Positions 4,340-62,560 of a stretch of DNA of 64,000 nucleotides are shown one piece after another (the stretch's first letter is position 1; each line of letters opens with the position of its first letter). The stretch covers positions 3,275,189-3,339,188 of the forward strand of contig OZ199840.1 of assembly GCA_964304625.1 (NCBI GenBank), written 5' to 3'. Both the position numbers and the translations under genes were made by a program. Below the pieces are notes generated by a model. It saw only the letters and a program-made list of their open reading frames with translations, made no database searches and was not told where the DNA came from. Source of the DNA: Kudoa neothunni (taxonomy: Eukaryota; Animalia; Cnidaria).

Positions 4340-7420
<3,081 letters not shown>

Positions 7421-10619: not shown

Positions 10620-12435
10620 TTAATGACAAATTCGTGGAATGAGTTATAATAAGAATGTTTTTTAGATTTAAACGAAATTATCTGCATACTTAAACTTTTA
10701 ATAATAAACTTAATATAAAAGTTGTCATTCTGCTTTATCCAATCTTTTAGATTACAAAGATTGACGTTTTCGACATTTTATCACAGAATTAGAATCCGAC
10801 GAATTTGAGTAACATCACCACATTGATGATATCGAAAATTTAAATAAGATCACTTTTCGACTCTATGAAATATTCTTTGTTAAAATTAATCCTCTTCGAT
10901 ATCACTCGCACCTACACGACAGCATATTTATTCTTTATTTTGTCGATAGAATGTCGTAAACATTTGAATTATAGTACATAATTTTGTTTACTATTTAATA
11001 AAAAATTTTATCGTCATATAAACTCAAAATCGTCTCGTGTGTAAGGTACATAATATCTTATAATTTAGAATATTCAAAACTTTATTCATTCAATATATTA
11101 AAGCCTTTTATTTGGAAGAATAGATGAAAATATGTTCTTCTTTGATATAAAAATGTATTCGAATTATGTTACAATACACTCAGAAAGTGAAACGTACGTG
11201 AGGACTGTACACGTACAAAAATTTGGGATAGCGTAAAATTGTATTGTCGTGGCTTAAAAAATATTTACAAAGTCGTTAAAAATAATAAAGATTGGATTTA
11301 AATGTTTTATTATTAAGTAAAGAAGATGTGAATAATCACAAGATCATCATAATAGGAATTTATCTTAGAAAAATCTAGGATAGTTTAAGCGTGCAAGTTA
11401 TTATAACGTTAAATGATACTTTAAAAAAAACTTAAAATAACATAAACTTCAGAAATAAAAATTTAGCCACTTTAACGTTAAAATTATTACTCAGAAGCGA
11501 GCTAATCTCTAGTAGATTAAACTTTACAACTAATACTTTTATTATTTGTGTACAGATTTATCTCGGCTTATCCACAATAATGACGAAGAAATATTGATAA
11601 GAAGCTCCGTGATACAAAATGGAAACAAGAATTTTCATTTAATGAGCTGATAATTTAACGAAACCATCAGCACTAAAAAGATCAATTCATAAGGATTTGA
11701 TCGAAAATTCAATGATCGAATAGCCACAATGCCTTAAGATTGTGTAAAGTTGTATGTATCGATCGAGACAAGGTAGATCGTTAAAACAAAAAAATAAATG
11801 AGATTATATTACGAAGACGTTTCGTAGAGCATTATAGATAATTAATTTTTAATGAAATCTCCAAGGTGATTAATAAAAAAATTCTAAGGGTATTGAAATT
11901 TACACTGGAGTTGTGCCAATAATGCGCAGAGATTCGAAAGAATTGAATGTTGTTTTTACTTTTTGAATTTTCAAATTTTATCCTCATTTTTTGAAGGTAC
12001 CTTTGATCATTGATAATTAAATTAAGATAATTTTATTTAATACTATTATTTGTGCAATGATAACTCTGTTTTTCGATTAAATTAACAAATAAATTTATCC
12101 TTAGAATTAATTTCGTGGAGGTTAATGGTAAGCTTGTGTTAACTACCTCTTATTAATATAATATAAAGTGAAATTAAAATTTATTTGTTGATTAAAATTA
12201 ATATAATATCAAATAAATCTATGTTGTAATTTTCAAATTAATCTCTTCAAATGTTTATAAGGTTCAATGAGGATATAAGGGGTTGAACCTCTATTAATTA
12301 TACAAGATTTTAATCTTTATCTCTACGAGAATCAATTTTATAGCAATAATATTAATCTTTTGGAATTGTATAATTTTATTTGAAAGAAAATAGCTCCTAG
12401 CTCAAATAACATCTGTTAGTGTGAAATTTGGTTCG

Positions 12436-13775
12436 ATGAGTGACCAAGTGTCGGTTGCGGATGGTAGTTTTAGCGTCGGTTATTAGTATCAACGATAATT
12501 TTTAGAATTAAGTAGAGACGAGCTGTTTGTAGTGCCTTCCGAGGAAAATGGTTGTAAACACTTATTGAGAACACCAAAAGTTTGTGTTTATTCCATTATC
12601 GATATGTATATGATACCATCCTTTAGACATTCAGCAAAGAATTCATTGCTACTCCGTACGAAAAATCTATAACTGAATGGATGTTTCTGTGCTCATCTGG
12701 AGATTGTGACGCGATAATAACATTTCTCGAAAATAATCCAAGTTTTATGAATGAAAAGGATCCATTATGGGTAAAACTAATGAAGACATTTTCCATATAT
12801 ATATTTCTGATTTTAGGGGGTATTTTTCAGTGTGATATCAAACATAAAAAATATTTTTTATTTCATTAACATATGCTAATTAGGATTTAGATATTTTATA
12901 TTCTCCTTTATTTAGATGGTAATTTTATTTTTAATATCATTGTTTTGGTGTAATAGAATCATTTCTATTGATCATAACAATAAATACATCATAGTTATTA
13001 TGAATTTTTTATTTTTACTTTAAATAAATAGGCATGCCTTCATTGGTCAATAAAAATGGATAATCTACCACTTTTCGAGTATCTACTTCAAAATGGAGCT
13101 GATGTCAATATTAGAAATGTAACTATATTAAATATAGTATATACTTAATTTTATTTTAGAAGAATGTAATATTACCATTATTTTATTATTTATTACTTTG
13201 TACGCAATAGGGTGATACTCCTTTACACCTCATAGAGAAATATAACCGAACACAAATGCTTAACCTGATTAAACAAAACCAAAGTATTGGTATAATTCTA
13301 TGTGCGATTTATTGGGAAATTAGAACTGGATTCAACTATTGAAAATTACGACAGCTGGATTCCATATTTGAAGGTGGAACCGTACATCAGGCACACCATT
13401 AAAGTGCTCAAGAAAAAGAAAACCCTTATCCCATTGAAGAGGTTTTTCACTCTTCGAAGCAAGCCCTTAACTCCTAAAATGCCGTCAATAAGACGAAAAT
13501 CAGTACGTTCCGATGACAAGTTAAATAATGATGGCGGGAAGGTGTTGTCCAAACCACCTCCTGTCAAGGCCCCAGCAGTTGTAAGGTCCAGCTCTACTTC
13601 CACAGAAAGCGAAGGTGGAATGGTTTTATTGAAACGCTCCAATACAGTGATCAGAGATAGACCCCATTCAAATATTCTAACACCACACCTTGATTCCTAT
13701 TCAAAAGGAAATCCACTTCTGATTAGATCTAATATGGACCTCACCAAAGACTCCAATTCAAATGTTCATTTTTAA
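12436..13775 (+). CDS. Ankyrin-repeat protein (SOWAH/sosondowah-like) with 3-, 3- and 6-nt microexons
   Basis: Spliced product ...EWMFLCSSGDCDAIITFLENNPSFMNEKDPLW-G-M-ACLHWSIKMDNLPLFEYLLQNGADVNIRN-KN-GDTPLHL..., followed by a basic Ser/Pro-rich tail. Confidence 0.85.
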
Positions 13776-16700
13776 AATCTATTAAAATTAATTTTTTGTT
13801 TAGCATTTTAAAAAATATATCACATCAAAAAACACTCTCGACCCAGAACAAGCTATCTCTTCATTGTCAAAAATAACATATTTTAACCCTTGACCTAAAA
13901 ATACGTTGAACAATTTTTCATTTGTTGACATAACTATTTTTAACTATATGTGATGTCCTAAATCTATGCGCAAATGAGTTGCTCTTCGTATTCAAATATT
14001 TGTTGTATTATAACAATGATAATCCCATTTTTTATAATACAAATATATAAAAAAGAATTAAGAAATCTTTGATAGATAATTAAGCTTTTAAGTGTATAAT
14101 CCACCGCGTAACAGATTAACATTACGATAATAGGTTTTTTTGTTCCAACAACTAAACTACACAGTAAAATAAAATAAAAATTGTAAGTGTAATATGTATT
14201 CAGCGCGTATAGAAACACCTCGTCCAAAGCACACCAAACAATCCGTTTATTAACCGGCCGCTGCCGTTTAAGTTAGCACACTACAGTAAGACAATTGCGT
14301 ATGTTGATGAAATATTGCCATTACAATTAGAAGACCGCTTGATTCTTTTAATAGTAAACGTTGATGAGAGCTCAAAATTAATGTAAATATCCGTTATCGT
14401 TAGCTCAATACTTTTTAGTTAAGTGAGGAAAATGTGCTTAATATCAGCATCACCCACCAAATTGTGCGAAAAAAGGAACATCAATAATCTTTTCAAACAA
14501 AATCGACATTATACTTGGCCAACATTAACGATAATATTTTTCATAGTCTCCCAAAATTTATAATGCAATAAAGCACTTTAAATGGTCATAGAAAGTCTCT
14601 AATACTCACCAATTAAAAGAATACATTTAATTTATTTCAGCTGGAGCAAAAAAAACAAAGTTGTATAGATTTTATGTTTTAAACTATCTATTTCAAAGTT
14701 GTAACATTAGAGTCGCGATTATTTTGGAAGAAAGCCATCTCTTTTACATAATTCAGTGAAACATTCACTACCGTTTCCCTAAAAAGAATCAATATTATAG
14801 CTCATTATTATCTTGAAATATTCAACTTGGGAGCGTATTCTTCCACAAAGCGTATAATGGGTATACTCATGAGAAACTGTACCATCGGCATTCAACTAGA
14901 ACAAAACAGATGAAAAAATATGACAGTATCTACAAATACTTTGGGAATCGAAATCTGTGTAGAAGCAAAATCTAGTGATCCAATGATAGCTCCAGTTGCT
15001 GAGCTAAAAATGCATTATAAATAACTCTATTAATTAGGATTCACCATTTATTTGGATGATACACAGCAGAAGATTGAGTATTAGCCACACCTACCATTTT
15101 CTATTCGCGTGTCTAGTTGGACGATTTACAACGAGCGAATACGATTAGGATCGTCGTATGGTTTTTGGTGGATTTGATTTTGCATTTTAGTCCTACTATT
15201 CGGTATGTAATTCAACGTATTAAAAAATGGGTTTCAGTTGTTTTTATTACTGTGTTACATTAAGGAATATCCTTTATGTATTATTATTATTATTTTATAA
15301 ACTTACAAGGAAGTGTATTTTTACATAAAAATGAGTGGAATAATATTTTAATTACTTTATACTAATATTACTTGAAATATAAATAAAGTTTAATGAGAGT
15401 TTCATGGAAAATTTTGATATTCATTTTTTTATTTGTTCAGATGCTCACGCATGAATAAATTAGTCATGATTTTATTGTCAATATATGGAGTGATGTTGAT
15501 TATTAGTTTGAAAAAATAAAACTTAATAATATATGATTCTGATATCTAAAGATAGGTTTATTATTTTTACGAATATTTGATCTTACTGAGTAATTTTCTT
15601 TATTAATGTGTTTAAAGCTAATAAATTACCTCATAAAAATAAAAATATTAATTGTGATTGATAATATATTTAAATTTGAATTAACTTTAACTAACAATAC
15701 CATTTATCTAATATTATATATGAATTTAGACGACGTAAGAATGTAACTTTTTTTATTTTGGATATGTATTAGTACTCTTGATGGAAAAAATTTATGATTT
15801 CGAGATTAGGCAAATATTTTATGAATCGAACTGTAAATGAAATAATCATATAACTTCTTATAAGATTTATTGCAACTGTTACGTTTAATTACTTGTTGGG
15901 GCTTTTTACTAAAATATAGATCAGGAGTAAACATATCAAATATCTCGATAGTATTAATAAATATGAACTTTTTACTCGTTTTCATATGGTATTACATAAT
16001 TTTAAAATATGTTTGAACTATAATTGTAACAAATACGTTCTGTGAATATAGAAGCATTAGATCTAAGTTTAATATCATCCAGTTTACTTTGTTAGTTACC
16101 ATGTACCTTTATAAATATTATTTATGATTAATAAGTAGATATTATTGCTGTTTGATAATTTTTAATATTTTTAACGGTCATTATAAGATTATTTATTTAT
16201 TTAGGAATCTAGTTAATATTATCTAAAAAATGAAAGATGGTTATATAATAATGTGTTCTAAAAGGATAAGGCAATAAAACGTTGATAATAACATGCCAAA
16301 CTTTTTATGGATCTAATATGTCAAGACTGCCAATTTTCTAGAAGCAACAATATTTACAGATGCGCTATAAAGATATTTAGAATATAGCCCAATAATAAGC
16401 TCAATTTTAACGGAATTAATAATGAAATAAATCGTTGAATAATGTGGATAACAAAAAAATATATAATTACAATATTATCAGTTATTCAATAAAAGTTGTG
16501 ATTAGTAGAATGAACAGTAAAGAAATTTATAAAATACGAATATTATAAATAATCAAATAGACTGAGAAATTAATTTATAATTTTTGAGTACGAAGAAAAT
16601 TCCACGCAGGACAGATTTCACGCATTACTTTATAATTATAAAATTACAAATATATTTTAATTTAGTTATTCGCTATTTCGTGGAGTGATATTTGGTATTA

Positions 16701-17526: not shown

Positions 17527-20430
17527 ATGTATCTTTTATCTTTTCTTATTATTAGCACACGTATTTTCAATGCTTGTTTTGATTTACTTATTAAACTTTA
17601 GTTGTAATTACCGGTTCGGCGGCCGAAAAAGCAGTAGCTGCTAAAGAGGTTTTTTATCAGATAGACAACTCCGATGCAGCTGGTAGAAAAATTCACATTG
17701 AATTAAAAGGTACAGAATATACAAATGAAAAAAAATGTCGCATAATGCAAGGAAAAGATGACGGAACTGACTACATAGAGATTGTTACATGCCAAAACAA
17801 TGAAAGTGGCAACACGGATAAATGTGTGAGGACTTGTGCTGGAAACGACAACAAACTGGAATATTCAAAGCTTTCGCCAAGAGTAAAATACCTATATATA
17901 AAAGATGGAAATGATGCAGATGCTGTTAAAGGTAATGAACATAAAAGCGGAGGAAATGTTTTTGGGCTCGCAATACGTAAGATAAATATTTGATATATAA
18001 ATTTAATATATATATAGCACTTTTGGTAGACCCTAATATAAAGGCATCCACACATAGCGATTATTCATTGAAGTTTATTGTAAAAACTTGTAAGTCAATG
18101 GCATGCCCCATTTATTACAAGGGAATAAAATACAAGGATATCACTGCAATAGACAGTTGTATAACGGCTAATAGTGGTAGCAATGTTAATCTGGTTGAAT
18201 ATGGACAAAAAATTCCATATTATGAAGTGAGGTGCTCTGATTACCCAATGTTCTATTACCATATGCCCAACACTTATATGAAAGAAAATATCGATATTTA
18301 TAAGCCTCATTTCTATGTTAAGTACAAATCTAGTGGAGAAACAACCAAATATTATCTTAAATTCACTAATCCATTACCGAGTGAAATATGTCTATTTGGA
18401 ATAAGAGATGGAGCGGATGTTAATCCAGCCCCCAATCAGTCTGCTTACTCTTCAAATTGTGGAGGAGCCAACAAATCATGCTATGCTCCATGTGACGACG
18501 TAGAACTCAATCTAAATCCTACTAAGCCAATCGTGGATATATTAGTTCAGACTAGGCATCACAAATTAGAAAAAAATACTGATCATTCATATGAGGGATA
18601 TACTTATAAAAAATTTGGTAATAATAACGATTATCGATAATTTATAATTTTTTTAGCTATCATCGAACTAACTGGAGCCGAAAATGCATTTATATCTAAT
18701 ACGGATACCGGAATTAAGATAAATATGCCATTACTTGCACCAACTACAGCTCCTGTTAATGACGTTAAATTTGATCAATGCATTGTCAAATATTATATTG
18801 CAGACACTGTCAAAAATACTGTGTTAACTAACGCGCAATGCTCAACAGGGTCCGATTGTGGAAATTCCTGTAGCGACACGATTACAATCCAAGGTTTGCC
18901 AAAAGGAAAACACATTATGTTCGAAATTGCTCCAAGCAGTATAACTAATTATGCGAATTTTAAGGAATACATTTTCGTCAAAACAAGTAATAAAATAAAA
19001 TTAATTTCTTTAAATTTTTTGCATAAGATAAAAATTCGGAGAAAAATTTCAACACCGCTAAGCCAAGCGCAACAGATACGACTTCTATAATAAAAGCAGT
19101 CGACGAAACTCTAGGAACAGAATCAACTGAGCCAACATGTGACTACTTCGTTAGTAGAGCTGGAAAGAATATTTTCGTTGAAGCAGTATGTGCGGATAGT
19201 AATCCTTGTAGAGGTTTGTGTAAGGAACCCAAAACGCTTATCGATCTCGAGCTCAATACTACCTATGACATCAAGGTGGTCGCTTATTCGGACTATGGTT
19301 TCACCATATTCACTGACATTAAAACAAGTATAATAATTATTATACTTAACGTGTTATTTACAAATATGGTAGAATTTTCGACTCTGACACTCACAAAAAA
19401 AATATTAGACAAAGGTTTTAAGTTGGTCGGTACTCTGTCAACACCAAAAAGCGATGCAAAATGCAATTATAAAATTACAGCAAAAGATGGAGAAACGTGG
19501 GGGACGGTTTATTCGTGCCCTGCTGAATTGTCCAGCCCAGCATTACCGACAGTGTTAAACAATGTTGCAGTTGTTAACACTGCTAGGTCCGGTTCAGGAC
19601 AGCAGCCATCAGTAACTAAGTCTAACAACATTGCGACATGCACTGAAGTACCAAACTGTAATAATATTGTATTCAGTGATGGTTATGATGCTTCAAAGGA
19701 ATATAAAGTTTTGGTCACTGCAATTGACCGATCCGAAGAAACTCCTATTATCATTCAACCAAGTAAATTTAATATCAATATTGTAATACTTAATAAATAA
19801 ATTTATAAATAATTACAACGTTTTTATAATATTAATTCCAACCTGTGCATATAATAATTATTTAGAATCAATAGTTGAAACTCCAACCGATTTGACCAAA
19901 ATAATATTAGTTTATATTGTACGTGATGAGAAGACATTAAAGATAACGACCACATTGCCTGTTGGCAAGAGTGAAGAATCTAGGTGTAAGTGGATATTGA
20001 TTAATTCAAGTGATGTTGCAAGGCCAACCGTAAAAAAATGTATCCGTAGTACAGGTGGCGACTGCACAGCACTTCCAAGTTGTAAAAGCTTCACAATTGA
20101 AAATGTCGAAGATCTAAACGATTATCATTTAATTGTATATCACAGCGGAGATGAGTCTGTATTGGGAACAGCTGAAATAGAACAAGGTAATTACACGCGT
20201 AATTCTTATTTAAATAGTATTATAGGAGCAACTGGAAGTAAATCAACGTAAATTAAACTATTACCTTTATATAATACATTAATTATTTTTTTAGATCTAG
20301 AAATACCACAATGTATTTTGGTGTGTATGATAATACATTAATATATCATTTTAGTATCGCAATATCGGTTGTTGCAGCGATTGTTGTGATTGGAGGAATA
20401 GGAGCATTCATTGCATTCAGGAAAAAATGA
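17527..20430 (+). CDS. Type-I surface membrane protein, paralog A (about 821 aa): signal peptide, seven 4-Cys FN3-like modules, TM helix, 3-aa tail
   Basis: Ten exons (17527-17560, 17602-17976, 18018-18617, 18657-18986, 19028-19327, 19373-19762, 19866-20186, 20226-20247, 20295-20312, 20355-20430) splice into one open frame of 2466 nt. FN3-like motif DLELNTTYDIKVVAYSDYG; TM IIAISVVAAIVVIGGIGAFIAF followed by RKK-stop. Confidence 0.9.
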
Positions 20431-20742: not shown

Positions 20743-22926
20743 CCTATTACGCATAACAAAAAAACTTAACAGGTATTATTATATTGTTTCCTGTTATTAA
20801 AGTGTATTTATTCGGTGTCAGCTTTAATTTATTTGTATTTTAATCCACATTTCTATTATTTTAGTTAGCAATATTAAAAATTATTTATTTCAAATTCACT
20901 TCTACCGTATGTTCCAACCGTCATAAACTTCACGTATCGTTCAATAAAAAACCATAGACAAAAAATATGTTTAAATTAATTTCATTGAGAGCCACAGTTT
21001 AAACGAATAATGTTTTTCTTTGAATTTTCATTACAAACACTTCGATCAGATAAGTGACGGACTTGCTTGTTTCTACTACAATACTGATAGGAGGACACAA
21101 ACGACATCGTTTTCATTGATTATTTTCTTGGTTTTCCGCTGGAGGATCACTTATTTTGATAAATTCGAAACCAACTATTTCCAATGTTCTTTTAACATCA
21201 GGCTGATTGTAAAAAAATGCAGTTTTATATCTCCTTTCCTGCTCGGGCTTAATTAATGACAAGGACAAATCCATGAGAAATTGTTGGTAACGATTTGACT
21301 TGTTTGTGTCACAATAATCGGGATTGCCACGAATAAAGACAACAAACGCATTTAACTCAGCTATATCAAGAATTTGACAAAATACAATGAACGGCCACTT
21401 TCTACATTTTCTTTTACATGTGTAGGTGGCAACACGTTGATCCAAAGTGTCAACGCCACATCTCTGTACATTATAATCCAAGATTGCTTTTGGAGTACGA
21501 TGCTCCGAAGAAAGAACTATTACAGCCTTATTTTTCCTCGGTACATAAGAAATTAAGGTAAATGACTTAAAGAAACAAAATAAAGATGAAAATATCTTTT
21601 AAGAGTTATTTGGTTGAAATTCAGGTGGAATAAATGTTCGACATTTGCGTACCGCACCAAGAATGGACGTTTTTCTTTCTCGCAAATATAGAGCTAGCTT
21701 TCAGGAAGTGAAATAATTATCACATGTAATAATTCTTCCCGAGTCCAACAAATGTAGAGTCAAATCAATAACAAATTTTACAACTTAGATTTGTTTCAAG
21801 GCACTCATCAATTTTACCCAAGTAAGGTAAAATATTGCCTACACAACGCGTTTGACTATCACATACGATCAAAAACTTAAACCCATATTTGGAAGGTTTT
21901 TTTGGCATGTAAACAAGAAATGATACACGCCCTCGGAACGGCTATAGTTGTTCATCTACGGCCATATTAGGTTCAAAGATGTAACTATTTCTACAGATTT
22001 CAGAAAAATTTCCAAACAGTTTATTGATGGGGGAAAATTTAACACCTGAATTTGAGAACTTTTTAAGCTTTCAATATTCATCAAAGCGCAAACAATTTAA
22101 GATTTTTCGAAATCTCATTTCACACATAGTGACGCGAAATAATGGTCTTCCGTGAAGTTCATGCCACAGAATCCTGGTATTCTCTAGATTTGATTTATAG
22201 GAACCAGCCAATAACAGCAATCCTAAGAAAGCTTTTAATTCGATGCAATCCAAGCGTTTCCACGAATCATTACATTTTTCAAGACCCTTACGGTTTGTGA
22301 ACGATAAAAATTCTTCGAGAATCTCTCCTCGTATAAAATGCGAATATGAGCTCAATATGGTTATTGTGTCGAATGTTTCAATACGTTTTCCTTTCTCTAG
22401 GTCATTATTGATTATATTTTGATTCTCAGTTCGTCCAGATATGGGTTTTGGAGACCAGATTAATGATTTGTCTTTTGAAATATAAGAAGTGGAACTTATA
22501 CTATTTTCATCCATTAGAGTGCATTCGTCTGTAGTGTCAATATCATCTATATGTAGACATATAATGCAACATCCTTCAAAATTGAAATTACTCGTTGATT
22601 TAGTATTACAAAATTTAGGTTCACTTTCTATCTGCTGTAACTATTCAATTTCACCTGAAGATACACTGTCTGCATCAGAAGAAGCCATTATTGCTGGACA
22701 ATATAACGTGTTGGGAAAATCATGTTAACATTTTGGACTAAAAATGACCGTATTTGATATTTGTTTACTTAATAATAAGCACATCTGTATCTAAACAGCT
22801 TAATATGAGATAAATTTTTTTTATGATTTTAAGTGAAATCCGGAGTGAAAATGATTAAAATTGACTAATTTAAAGCGAGTTTTATTCGAAAGTGCACTCA
22901 TGGAGTCCAGAGGTAATGTTTAAGGG
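20743..22926 (-). mobile_element. Decayed piggyBac (PGBD4-like) transposon, one end truncated
   Basis: Minus-strand fragments ELKAFLGLLLLAG, RPLFRVTM..RFRKILNCLRFD, VDEQL, KYGF/LKF, DYNVQRCGVDTLDQ, RKWPFIVF. The end GGG-TTAA lies at 22924-22930. Homologous to 60175-62560. Confidence 0.93.
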
Positions 22927-29454: not shown

Positions 29455-32369
29455 ATGGTGGGGAAGAAGGACCTTATAACGTTACTCATTGGTGTATCAC
29501 GTACATATAAATACCTGTGTTATTTATTTACAAAAATTTAGTTACAGCTACCCATTTGGCAGCCGAAACTCCAGCCGCTACTAGAGAAGTTTTCTATCAA
29601 ATCGACGCCTCCCATTCATCCAATAGAAAAATTCACATTGAATTAAAAGGAACAGAATATACAAATGAAAGGAAATGTCGAATAATGCGAGAAAAAGCTG
29701 ACGGAAGTGCCTTCGAGGAGATTAACACATGCCAGAGTAACGAGGCTGATAATAGCGGCAAATGTGTAAGGCCTTGTGCTGGAAGCAACAACAAACTGGA
29801 ATATTCAAAGCTTTCGCCGAGAGTAAAATACCTATATATAAAAGATGGAAACGCTGCCGGCCAAATAAACGCAGAAACTCATAAAAGAGGAGGAAATGTT
29901 TTTGGGCTCGCAATACGTAAGATAAATATTTGATATATAAATTTAATATATATTTAGCACTTTTGGTAGACCCCAATATAAAGGCATCCACACATAGCGA
30001 TTATTCATTGAAGTTTATTGTAAAAACTTGTAAGTCAATGGCATGCCCCATTTATTACAAGGGAATAAAATACAAGGATATCACTGCAATAGACAGTTGC
30101 GCAACATCTAGAAGTGCGATTGATGATCATTTGTTTGAATATGGGCAAAAAATCCCTTATTATGAAGTGAGATGCAGCGATTACCCAATGTTCTATTACC
30201 ATATGCCCAACACTTATATGAAAGAAGATATCGATATTTATAAGCCTCAATTCTATGTTAAGTACAAATCTAGTCTAGAAACAACCAAATATTATCTTAA
30301 ATTCACTAATCCATTACCGAGTGAAATATGTCTTTTTGGAATAAGAGATGGAGCGGATGTTTCTAATGCCGCCGATCGGCCAGCTTATATTTCAGATTGC
30401 GGTGGGACCAAAAAATCATGCTATGCTCCATGTGACGACGTAGAACTCAATCTAAATCCTACTAAGCCAATCGTGGATATATTAGTTCAGACTAGGCATC
30501 ACAAATTAGAAAAAAATACTGATCATTCATATGAGGGATATACTTATAAAAAATTTGGTAATAATAACGATTATCGATAATTTATAATTTTTTTAGCTAT
30601 CATCGAACTAACTGGAGCCGAAAATGCATTTATATCTAATACGGATACCGGAATTAAGATAAATATGCCATTACTTGCACCAACTACTGCGGGTGCCGCT
30701 GTTGTTGCTTTTAATCAATGTAAAATCAAGTACTATATTGCAGACACTGTCAAAAATCCGGCATTGATCAATGCACAATGCTCATCTAGTCAAAATTGTC
30801 CGAGTGAATGTAGCGCTGTTAGGACAATTCAAAATTTACCCGAAGGAAAACACATTATGTTAGAAATTGCTCCAAGCAGTATAACTAATTATGCGAATTT
30901 TAAGGAATACATTTTCGTCAAAACAAGTAATAAAATAAAATTAATTTCTTTAAATTTTTTGCATAAGATAAAAATTCGGAGAAAAATTTCAACACCGCTA
31001 AGCCAAGCGCAACAGATACGACTTCTATAATAAAAGCAGTCGACGAAACTCTAGGAACAGAATCAACTGAGCCAACATGTGACTACTTCGTTAGTAGAGC
31101 TGGAAAGAATATTTTCGTTGAAGCAGTATGTGCGGATAGTAATCCTTGTAGAGGTTTGTGTAAGGAACCCAAAACGCTTATCGATCTCGAGCTCAATACT
31201 ACCTATGACATCAAGGTGGTCGCTTATTCGGACTATGGTTTCACCATATTCACTGACATTAAAACAAGTATAATAATTATTATACTTAACGTGTTATTTA
31301 CAAATATGGTAGAATTTTCGACTCTGACACTCACAAAAAAAATATTAGACAAAGGTTTTAAGTTGGTCGGTACTCTGTCAACACCAAAAAGCGATGCAAA
31401 ATGCAATTATAAAATTACAGCAAAAGATGGAGAAACGTGGGGGACGGTTTATTCGTGTCCTGCTGAATTGTCCAGCTCAGCATTACCGACAGTGTTAAAC
31501 GATGTTGCAGTTGTTAACATTGCTAGGTCCGGTTCAGGACAGCAGCCATCAGTAACTAAGTCTAACAACATTGCGACATGCACTGAAGTACCAACCTGTA
31601 ATAATATTGTATTCAGTGATGGTTATGATGCTTCAAAGGAATATAAAGTTTTGGTCACTGCAATTGACCGATCCGAAGAAACTCCTATTATCATTCAACC
31701 AAGTAAATTTAATATCAATATTGTAATACTTAATAAATAAATTTATAAATAATTACAACGTTTTTATAATATTAATTCCAACCTGTGCATATAATAATTA
31801 TTTAGAACCAATAGTTGAAACTCCAACCGATTTGACCAAAATAATATTAGTTTATATTGTACGTGATGAGAAGACATTAAAGATAACGACCACATTGCCT
31901 GTTGGCAAGAGTGAAGAATCTAGGTGTAAGTGGATATTGATTAATTCAAGTGATGTTGCAAGGCCAACCGTAAAAAAATGTATCCGTAATACAGATGGCG
32001 ACTGCACGGCACTTCCAAGTTGTAAAAGCTTCACAATTGAAAATGTCGAAGATCTAAACGATTATCATTTAATTGTATATCACAGCGGGGATGAGTCTGT
32101 ATTGGGAACAGCTGAAATAGAACAAGGTAATTACACGCGTAATTCTTATTTAAATAGTATTATAGGAGCAACTGGAAGTAAATCAACGTAAATTAAACTA
32201 TTACCTTTATATAATACATTAATTATTTTTTAGATCTAGAAATACCACAATGTATTTTGGTGTGTATGATAATACATTAATATATCATTTTAGTATCGCA
32301 ATATCGGTTGTTGCAGCGATTGTTGTGATTGGAGGAATAGGAGCATTCATTGCATTCAGGAAAAAATGA
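29455..32369 (+). CDS. Type-I surface membrane protein, paralog B (about 825 aa)
   Basis: Same 10-exon structure as paralog A with an intact frame. Different leader (MVGKKDLITLLIGVSLTATHLAA); identical TM and tail. Confidence 0.9.
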
Positions 32370-60174: not shown

Positions 60175-62560
60175 CTCTTAAACACACCTCCTGGAGGTCC
60201 CGTAAACATTAACCCTGGGCTCTTGGAGCTCAGGGATTAGCTTACGTCGGACACAGTATTAAATTTTATCTTAAATTAACTCTTCTACTACTAGTAGGTC
60301 TCATTATATATGATATATAAACAGAAATAGAATATTTAAACGTAGTAAGATAAACTATACCATTTTACATAACAACAAAAAATATTATATTGTTTCCTAT
60401 TATTAAAATGTATTTATTCGGTGTCAGCTTAAATTTATTTGTATTTTAATCAACATTCGTATTATGTTAGTTAGCAAAATTAATAATTATTTATTTTAAA
60501 TTCATTTCTACTATATGTTCCAACCGTTATAAACTTCACATAGCGTTCAATAAAAAACCATAGGCAACAGATATGTTTAAATTATTTTTGTTGTGGGTCA
60601 CAGTTTAAACAAATAATGTTTTTTTTTGAATGTTCATTACAAACACTTCGATCACATAAGTGACGGACTTGCTTGTTTCTACTACAATACTGATAGGAGG
60701 ACACAAACGACATCGCTTTCTTTGATTATTTTCTTGGTTTTCTACTGGAGGATCAGTTTCTTTGTTAAATTCGAAACCAACTGTCTCCATTATTCTTTTA
60801 ACAGCAGGCTGGTATGAAACAAATGAAATTTTATATCTCCATTCCTGTTCGGGCTTAATAAATGATATGGACAAATCCATGAGAAATTGTTGGTAACGAT
60901 TTGACTTGTTTGTGTCACAATAATCGGGATTGCCATGAATAAAGACAACAAATGCATTGAACGCAGCTATACCAAATATTTGACAAAATACTGCAAACGG
61001 CAGTCGTCTACATTTTCATTTACATGTGTACATGGAAACGCATTGATCCAAAGTGTCAACGTCACATTTCTATACATTATAATCCAAAATTGCTGTTTTT
61101 TTAATAAGGTACTCCCAACTAACGCTTGGGGTACGATGCTCCGAAGAAAGAATTATTACAGCCTTGTTTTTCCTCGGTACGTATGAAATTAGGGTAAATG
61201 ACTTATAGAAACCAAATAATGACGAAAATATCTTTCGAGAGTTGGTTGGTTGAAATTCAAGTGGAATAATTGTTCGACATTTGCGTACCGTGCCAAGAAT
61301 GGACGTTTTTCTTTCTCGTAGATATAGAGCTAGCTTCTGGGAATTGAAATGATTATCACATGTAACAGTTCTTCCCGAGTCCAAAAAATGTTGAGTCAAG
61401 TCAATGACAACTTTAAAACTCAGATTTGTTTCACGGCAATCATAAATTTTACCCATGTAAGGTAAAACATTGAATAAGTAACGTATTTGACTATCACATA
61501 CCATCCAAAATTTTAACCCATATTTGGAAGATTTTTTTGGAATATAAACAAGAAATGATACACACACTCGGAACGGATATAGTTGTTCATCTACGGGAAA
61601 ATTAGGTCAAAAAATGTAACTGTTACTACAGATTTCAGAACAATTTCCAAACAGTTTATGGATGGGGAAAAATTTAGCACCTGAACTTGAGAACTTTTTA
61701 AGCTTCCAATATTCATCAAAGCGTAAGCAATTCAAGATTTTTTGAAATCTCATTCACTCATCATGGCGCGAAATAATTGTCTTCCGTGAAGTTCATGCCT
61801 GAGAACCCTGGTACTCTCTAGGTTTGATTTATTGACACCAGCCAATAACAACAATTCTAAGATAGCTTTTAATTTGATGCAATCTAGGCGTTTCCACGAA
61901 TCATTATATTTTTCAAGACCTTTACGGTTTATGAACGATAAAATTTCTTCGAGCATTTCCTCTTATAAGATGCGAAAATGAGCTCGATATAGTTGTTGTG
62001 TCCAATGTTTCAATAGGTTTTCCATCCTCTAGGTCATTATCGATAATATTTTGGTTGGCAGTTCGTCCAGGTATGGATTTTGGAGACCAGACTAAAGATT
62101 CGTCTTTTGAAATATAAGAAATGGAACCTGTATTATATTAATCCATTAGGGTGCATTCGTTTGTAGTATCAATATCATCTATAAATAGAAATATAATGCA
62201 AAATCCTTCAAAATTGAAATCACTCAATAATTTAGCATTACATAATTTAGGTTCTTATTCAATCAGCAATAACTTTTCCGTTTCACCTGAGAATATACTT
62301 TCTGCGTTAGATCAAGCCATTATTGCTCGACAATACAATGTGGTGGGAAAATCCTGTTAATATTTGCGATAAAAAGGGCCGGATTTGTTATTTGTTTACT
62401 TAATAATAAGCTTGCATGTATCTCAAACAGCTTAATATGCTGGGAAACAATTTTTTACGACTTGATGTGAAATCCGAGGTAAAAATGATTAAAATTGATG
62501 AATTTAAAGCGAGTTTTATTTGGAAGTGGGCTCTTGGAGCCCAGAGATAATGTTTAAGGG
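60175..62560 (-). mobile_element. Full-length decayed piggyBac (PGBD4-like) transposon
   Basis: TTAA TSD at 60171-60174 and 62561-62564; TIR C(T/C)CTTAAACA; subterminal CTGGGCTC-type palindromes; KYGLKFWMVCDS, VTCDNHFNS and LGTVRKCR fragments. Confidence 0.95.

Follow-up and report, generated by a model that had tools for sequence, protein, structure and literature searches.

Two consecutive single-codon exons, GGG (Gly) and ATG (Met), are very probably real coding microexons of a small ankyrin-repeat gene in Kudoa neothunni, where they would divide a gap of 261 nt between two ordinary exons into three tiny introns. Such a pair of 3-nt exons had been proposed in the earlier note, and the proposal was supported by the conservation of both codons in four copies of the gene, by the divergence of the surrounding introns, and by a sequence pattern that occurs only in this gene family. 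From these comparisons, we infer that GGG and ATG are included in the mRNA. The support for both exons comes wholly from paralogs in one genome, and decoy AG and GT sites are easy to come by in Kudoa because its splice signals carry little information (PMC13644364); with this limit, our confidence in the two exons is high.

The stretch of DNA analyzed as a whole, hereafter the window, comprises 64,000 nt with about 29% GC and corresponds to positions 3,275,189 to 3,339,188 of contig 3. The assembly has 40.26 Mb in four contigs, three of 17.15, 12.04, and 11.05 Mb and one small. The published K. neothunni assembly, curated from yellowfin-tuna data, has 40.2 Mb, an N50 of 12.0 Mb, and three chromosomes plus a circular mitochondrial genome, with an intron length of 49 bp and a gene prediction made without usable RNA (PMC12239612). 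Kudoa splice signals are reduced to "GTa" and "AG" (PMC13644364). The gene in the window is designated W; its paralogs P1 and P2 lie on contig 2, and P4 lies on contig 3, 84 kb upstream of W.

For the transcript junctions, the 21-mer CCATTATGGGGGATGGCATGC versus CCATTATGGGCATGC had been proposed in the earlier note. Window positions 11000-15000, an interval of 4 kb that includes the gene, received 0 reads from three species-labelled metatranscriptomic runs, an outcome that counts neither for nor against the two exons. The same interval was covered only by DNA contigs of one sample, probably the source sample.

Gene model in the window

The features of W are collected in Table 1, and homology searches of this gene model were run exon by exon. 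Exon A and exon B are separated by a gap of 261 nt (12771-13031) with 19% GC, which contains only two AG-N3-GT sites, namely GGG and ATG, each with a canonical AG upstream and GT downstream. The positions of both triplets and the lengths of the three introns around them had been given exactly, as was found when they were re-read from the sequence. The end of exon A and the start of exon B are both in phase 0, and GGG and ATG are sense codons that keep the frame. A 15-nt candidate (12817-12831) and a 1-nt candidate (12831) in the same gap were rejected, having no equivalent listed in the paralog gaps.

Table 1. Exons, introns, and candidate microexons of the gene W, in window positions
Feature	Position	Strand	Basis
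Candidate start codon as an ATG-only first coding exon, aaaATG/GTTGTA	12549..12551	+	Uncertain, deduced only
Exon A: N-terminal helix and degenerate first ankyrin repeat, ending in KDPLW (AAG GAT CCA TTA TGG)	12627..12770	+	Translation, paralogs
Intron 1, 46 nt, GTAAAA...TTTTAG	12771..12816	+	Equivalents of 47 (P1), 48 (P2), and 45 (P4) nt
Candidate microexon 1, GGG (Gly), TTTTAG/GGG/GTATTT	12817..12819	+	GGA in P1 and P2, GGG in P4, at the same place
Intron 2, 96 nt, GTATTT...ATTTAG	12820..12915	+	Sequence
Candidate microexon 2, ATG (Met), TTTAG/ATG/GTAATT	12916..12918	+	ATG followed by GTAA in all four copies
Intron 3, 113 nt, GTAATT...AAATAG	12919..13031	+	Sequence
Exon B, 87 nt: body of ankyrin repeat 2, ACLHW...GADVNIRN (start GCA TGC CTT CAT TGG)	13032..13118	+	Pfam Ank PF00023
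Intron 4, 41 nt	13119..13159	+	Sequence
Candidate 6-nt microexon AAGAAT (Lys-Asn), tttattttAG/AAGAAT/GTAATA	13160..13165	+	Sequence, paralog equivalents
Intron 5, 45 nt	13166..13210	+	Sequence
Exon C, 73 nt, with a phase-1 end: beginning of ankyrin repeat 3 (GDTPLH...)	13211..13283	+	Pfam Ank, E 0.031
Intron 6, 40 nt; alternative in-frame donor at 13290, giving 34 nt	13284..13323	+	Read from sequence
Last exon: orphan, basic, Ser/Pro-rich tail of about 150 residues; stop 13773-13775	13324..13775	+	Open frame

The residues W18, M19, K44, D45, P46, and W48 of exon A are invariant in W, P1, and P2. Between the stop codon at 12624-12626 and Met 12681, which stands just after the conserved Trp, there is no in-frame ATG, and P1 and P2 carry 13-20 residues ahead of the conserved W-M. 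A possible ATG-only first exon at 12549, followed by a 75-nt intron, would make the N-terminus of W resemble those of P1 and P2. The translation of exon B is ACLHWSIKMDNLPLFEYLLQNGADVNIRN. For intron 6, the donor at 13284 was favored because exon C of the paralogs also has 73 nt. The tail encoded by the last exon gave no Pfam match, no homolog by word search of the 159-aa frame, and no match in the ESM Atlas; in its own genome, the 159-aa frame matched only itself.

Several further features of the window were recorded. A piggyBac-type transposase domain (PF13843) was found in the open frames at 22071-22514 (minus strand, E 1.6e-12) and 61070-61567 (minus strand, E 7.6e-21), which represent copies or remnants of transposons. 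At 17990-20251 and 29930-32191, two sets of four frames have the same lengths (216, 121, 194, and 119 aa) and a constant offset of 11,940 nt, which looks like the result of tandem segmental duplication; an FN3-like feature had been noted earlier in this region (17602-20186). The window contained no Rfam matches.

Conservation in paralogs and chance level

P1 and P2, a tandem pair, were found by a six-frame search of the genome with exon A, while P4 was found on contig 3 from 3203659 onward by the strict DNA pattern described below. The copies have diverged considerably, with exon A of P1 and P2 sharing 27-33% identity with W and exon B of P1, P2, and P4 sharing 28-41%. In all four copies, the only AG-N3-GT sites in the gap from KD-x-x-[WF] to [TAS]-x-L-H-W are GGR and then ATG. 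The Gly sites read ttttAG/GGA/GTAATT in P1, ataaAG/GGA/GTATTT in P2, and atttAG/GGG/GTACAT in P4, and the corresponding Met sites read ctttAG/ATG/GTAAAA, ttatAG/ATG/GTAATA, and atatAG/ATG/GTAATT. The Gly codon thus varies synonymously, being GGG in W and P4 and GGA in P1 and P2. All eight 3-nt sites are followed by a GTA donor, and seven of the eight combine YAG with GTA, as against 12% of the background AG-NNN-GT sites. Since the intron interiors of W, P1, and P2 could not be aligned (z of -2.4 to +1.75 against shuffles), the conservation of the Gly and Met sites is not leftover homology.

The remaining exon boundaries followed the same plan. Exon B has 87 nt in each of the four copies, and exon C, as read from the sequences, has 73 nt and a phase-1 end in P1, P2, and P4 as in W; therefore, the exon plan has been conserved although the sequences have diverged. 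Equivalents of the 6-nt AAGAAT are AAACAA in P2, TTTACG in P1, and ATA plus CAC in P4, and P1 and P2 have further AG-N6-GT candidates. In P4, exon A ends in KDDFF and is followed by GGG, ATG, and exon B (87 nt). The 146-nt gap after exon B has just two AG-N3-GT sites, the candidates ATA and CAC. The layout of P4 is 3-3-87-3-3 nt, with up to four single-codon exon candidates around one exon.

The P1-P2 pair is duplicated in near-identical form 32.3 kb away (contig 2, 177-182 kb and 209-214 kb). Over about 1 kb, the differences between the duplicates are almost all single-base indels, with two substitutions, and in the duplicate of P2, exon B is frameshifted by one of the indels. The pair may have been duplicated very recently, with one copy a pseudogene, or the duplicates may be an artefact of assembly or haplotypes. 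Because they differ almost only by single-base indels, the contig-2 duplicates provide no independent information.

The chance level was estimated from a background of 525 kb of the same genome, read on both strands, using low-GC segments. At least one usable AG-NNN-GT site was present in 25% of the 261-nt segments, and two in order were present in 2.7%. On the window alone, the two 3-nt candidates are suggestive, which is weak evidence and not significant. Of the low-GC background segments, about 23,000 for each gap length, none had an ordered AG-GGN-GT ... AG-ATG-GT, and from background frequencies of 7.6e-5 and 6.1e-5 per nt, the probability of the ordered pair by chance is estimated at roughly 3-6e-6 in each paralog. 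The strict pattern AGGGNGTA-N30-120-YAGATGGTA had six matches in the 40-Mb genome, all six of them in this ankyrin family (four genes and the two near-identical duplicates), while the reversed control had one match.

Searches for relatives with a different arrangement were negative within their scope. An exon-B profile search of the genome returned no paralog in which G-M is contiguous with the flanking exons; the other ankyrin genes of the genome are long open frames in the same search. No retrocopies with either spliced junction were found in the genome (at most 3 mismatches). No orthologs outside the genome were recovered when the exon-A profile was run with HMMER against 1.84 billion representatives, the 54 hits all being generic multi-ankyrin proteins, and no transcript-derived ortholog protein was found by word search, exon-A profile, or ESM Atlas. 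One candidate (P0032) that looked like an exon reading into the intron was rejected, because it belongs to an unrelated gene of a metagenome scaffold in which a single ordinary intron precedes Gly-Tyr-Thr-Pro-Leu.

Ankyrin repeat, intron size, and alternative readings

Exon B matched the Pfam Ank profile PF00023 with an E value of 9.8e-07 and 29.2 bits (cut-off 21.1) over profile positions 5-32. The exon starts at profile position 4 (T/A), so that the hairpin Gly-x of positions 2-3 is not in exon B, and these two positions fall either to G-M or to the two residues at the end of exon A (L-W, V-W, or F-F). Gly stands at position 2 in 77% of 143 repeats from unrelated ankyrin proteins and in only 4 of 13 repeats of the other ankyrin genes of this genome, where Trp also occurs; one further ankyrin gene of the genome has the string G-M-[ST]-P-L-H at two places. 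The earlier note had argued that the ankyrin consensus is two residues short unless both codons are included. G-M would supply the hairpin Gly-x that is otherwise missing; the shortfall of two residues does not hold at this junction, where the counts are ambiguous. Counting from the Gly of the helix turn in repeat 1, the direct join without G-M is in frame and already gives a 33-residue repeat; with the Asp conserved in KDPLW as the reference, the direct join lacks one residue relative to the canonical D-x-x-G-x-T and the version with G-M has one too many. An ankyrin protein without G-M is structurally conceivable. The two-residue shortfall holds instead at the next intron, where repeats 2 and 3 lie 31 residues apart if the 6-nt AAGAAT exon is skipped and 33 if it is included. 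None of 115 repeat pairs had the 31-residue spacing, and 8 of 10 pairs of this genome had a spacing of 33.

As a yardstick for intron size, the methylmalonyl-CoA mutase gene (PF01642) at about 5359-7175 of the window, on the minus strand, was resolved into about ten exons with some ten introns of about 39-60 nt in the best frame-keeping solutions, in agreement with the published 49 bp (PMC12239612). In the model with microexons, the sub-introns measure 46, 96, 113, 41, and 45 nt in W; 47, 53, 42, 46, and 53 nt in P1; 48, 39, 45, 53, and 44 nt in P2; and 45, 39, 44, 45, 39, and 56 nt in P4. Over the four genes, 19 of the 21 fall within 39-56 nt. Left unsplit, the gaps of 134-261 nt would be outliers against the usual intron size of the genome.

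These observations bear directly on the reading that the gap is one ordinary intron of 261 nt, in which TGG is joined to GCA and the triplets are chance decoys in AT-rich sequence. Such decoys are not rare, as the background rates for one and two candidates indicated; Kudoa splice signals are minimal, and the direct join stays in frame and keeps a 33-residue repeat. However, chance would have to produce GGR and then ATG, as sole candidates, in three further diverged paralogs whose introns are otherwise randomized, at the low estimated rate per paralog given above, in a pattern that is family-exclusive throughout the genome and in gaps that are unusually long for it. We consider the ordinary intron highly improbable. 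The same low standing is given to the reading of the AG-codon-GTA elements as intronic splicing aids, that is, recursive or stepping-stone sites absent from the mRNA. Their layout does resemble the juxtaposed acceptor and donor of the ratchet points in recursive splicing (PMC8605326), but a recursive site restores a 5' splice site at the junction and needs AG directly before GT for this, whereas three bases stand between them at both the GGG and the ATG site and TGG/GGG is no donor. Recursive splicing is described for long introns (PMC8605326), unlike the gaps of 134-261 nt here, and the synonymous change between GGG and GGA next to an invariant ATG looks like coding constraint.

A less remote but still unlikely reading accepts both microexons as real and makes their use alternative, such that transcripts with 0, 1, or 2 extra codons would encode isoforms of different hairpin length. 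Alternative use is documented for many of the 3-nt exons known, such as those of Drosophila troponin T (PMC8042270) and cytohesin-1 (PMC6314551). All junctions are in phase 0 and every combination is in frame, and one codon alone would produce the canonical D-x-x-X-x-T spacing, comparable to the KDKEWLTPLHWA repeat in another ankyrin gene of this genome. Yet both codons, with strong GTA donors, were kept in all four copies, a pattern that agrees at least as well with constitutive inclusion, and the known regulators of microexons, of the SRRM4/eMIC type, belong to Bilateria.

Splicing order and relation to known microexons

With GGG and ATG taken as coding microexons, the 261-nt gap would consist of three tiny introns with one codon between each pair, and Gly-Met would fill positions 2-3 of the beta-hairpin (G-x-T/A-x-L-H) of the second ankyrin repeat in a small, lineage-specific protein. 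One ankyrin repeat of 99 nt (33 residues) would accordingly be encoded in pieces of 3+3+87+6 nt. With introns of about 40-55 nt and minimal signals, pairing of splice sites presumably takes place across the intron (intron definition), and the length of an exon would not be limiting. U1 pairs with exon positions -3 to -1. A 3-nt exon could not hold U2AF and U1 at the same time, because U1 pairing takes up the whole exon and the AG lies only 3 nt upstream; therefore, the three introns are probably removed one after another. Each splicing step would fuse a microexon codon to an exon of normal size. The GGG codon should stay in the mRNA, because the junction TGG/GGG that is present after the first step is no donor.

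In the micro-exon genes (MEGs) of Schistosoma, most of the coding sequence consists of many tandem symmetric microexons, and the products are secreted proteins. Unlike these, the genes described here would have three microexons (four in P4) among exons of 144, 87, 73, and about 450 nt. The 3-nt exons of Ncam, troponin T, and cytohesin-1 lie in long-intron genomes. Those predicted in Kudoa differ in sitting between introns of about 45 nt and in being conserved across paralogs. Single 3-nt exons have been reported for mouse Ncam and Drosophila troponin T (PMC8042270) and for human cytohesin-1, where an extra Gly is encoded (PMC6314551). The likeness is that one codon between canonical splice sites adds one residue and keeps the frame; the known exons are isolated, mostly alternative, and RNA-verified, whereas the Kudoa candidates stand two or four back to back and are known from sequence alone.

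Consecutive microexons in one gene also have precedents (PMC11162997, PMC12686416, PMC8831610). The RPS24 gene has a 3-nt exon inside a run of three microexons, which are alternative (PMC11162997), and plants have 1-nt exons and an adjacent pair of 5 and 12 nt (PMC8831610). As with the 1-nt microexons of plant APC11 and VPS55, the Kudoa candidates would be tiny, conserved coding exons missed by annotation; the plant exons are single, and they were found by conservation and RNA-seq and validated by RNA-seq and RT-PCR (PMC8831610). Drosophila ratchet points likewise have a 3' splice site near a 5' splice site and imply stepwise removal (PMC8605326), but leave nothing in the mRNA, whereas the three bases from AG to GT in Kudoa should be retained. 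A literature search returned no reports of adjacent or conserved 3+3-nt exons or of a 3-3-87-3-3 arrangement, and no literature that pairs "microexon" with Myxozoa. The myxozoan genome papers PMC12239612 and PMC13644364 do not mention microexons.

If RNA confirms the two exons, it would follow that exons below the footprint of U1 or U2AF can be defined by the spliceosome of an animal whose introns have about 45 nt, forcing ordered splicing, and that intron gain or subdivision can cut a structural repeat at its hairpin. Kudoa gene models, built without RNA, would then miss residues. For hidden microexons in genomes with tiny introns, a suggested rule is to inspect the introns that are two to three times the usual length.

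A broader and more tentative idea, which we regard as possible but doubtful, is that the Kudoa spliceosome works effectively without a lower limit on exon size, so that single-codon exons would be a regular, selected part of gene structure. Were this true, microexons might lie hidden across myxozoan genomes in introns that are two to three times as long as the usual 45-50 nt, and annotation done without RNA might be losing residues systematically. Kudoa would also offer a natural animal system for pure intron definition and ordered splicing.
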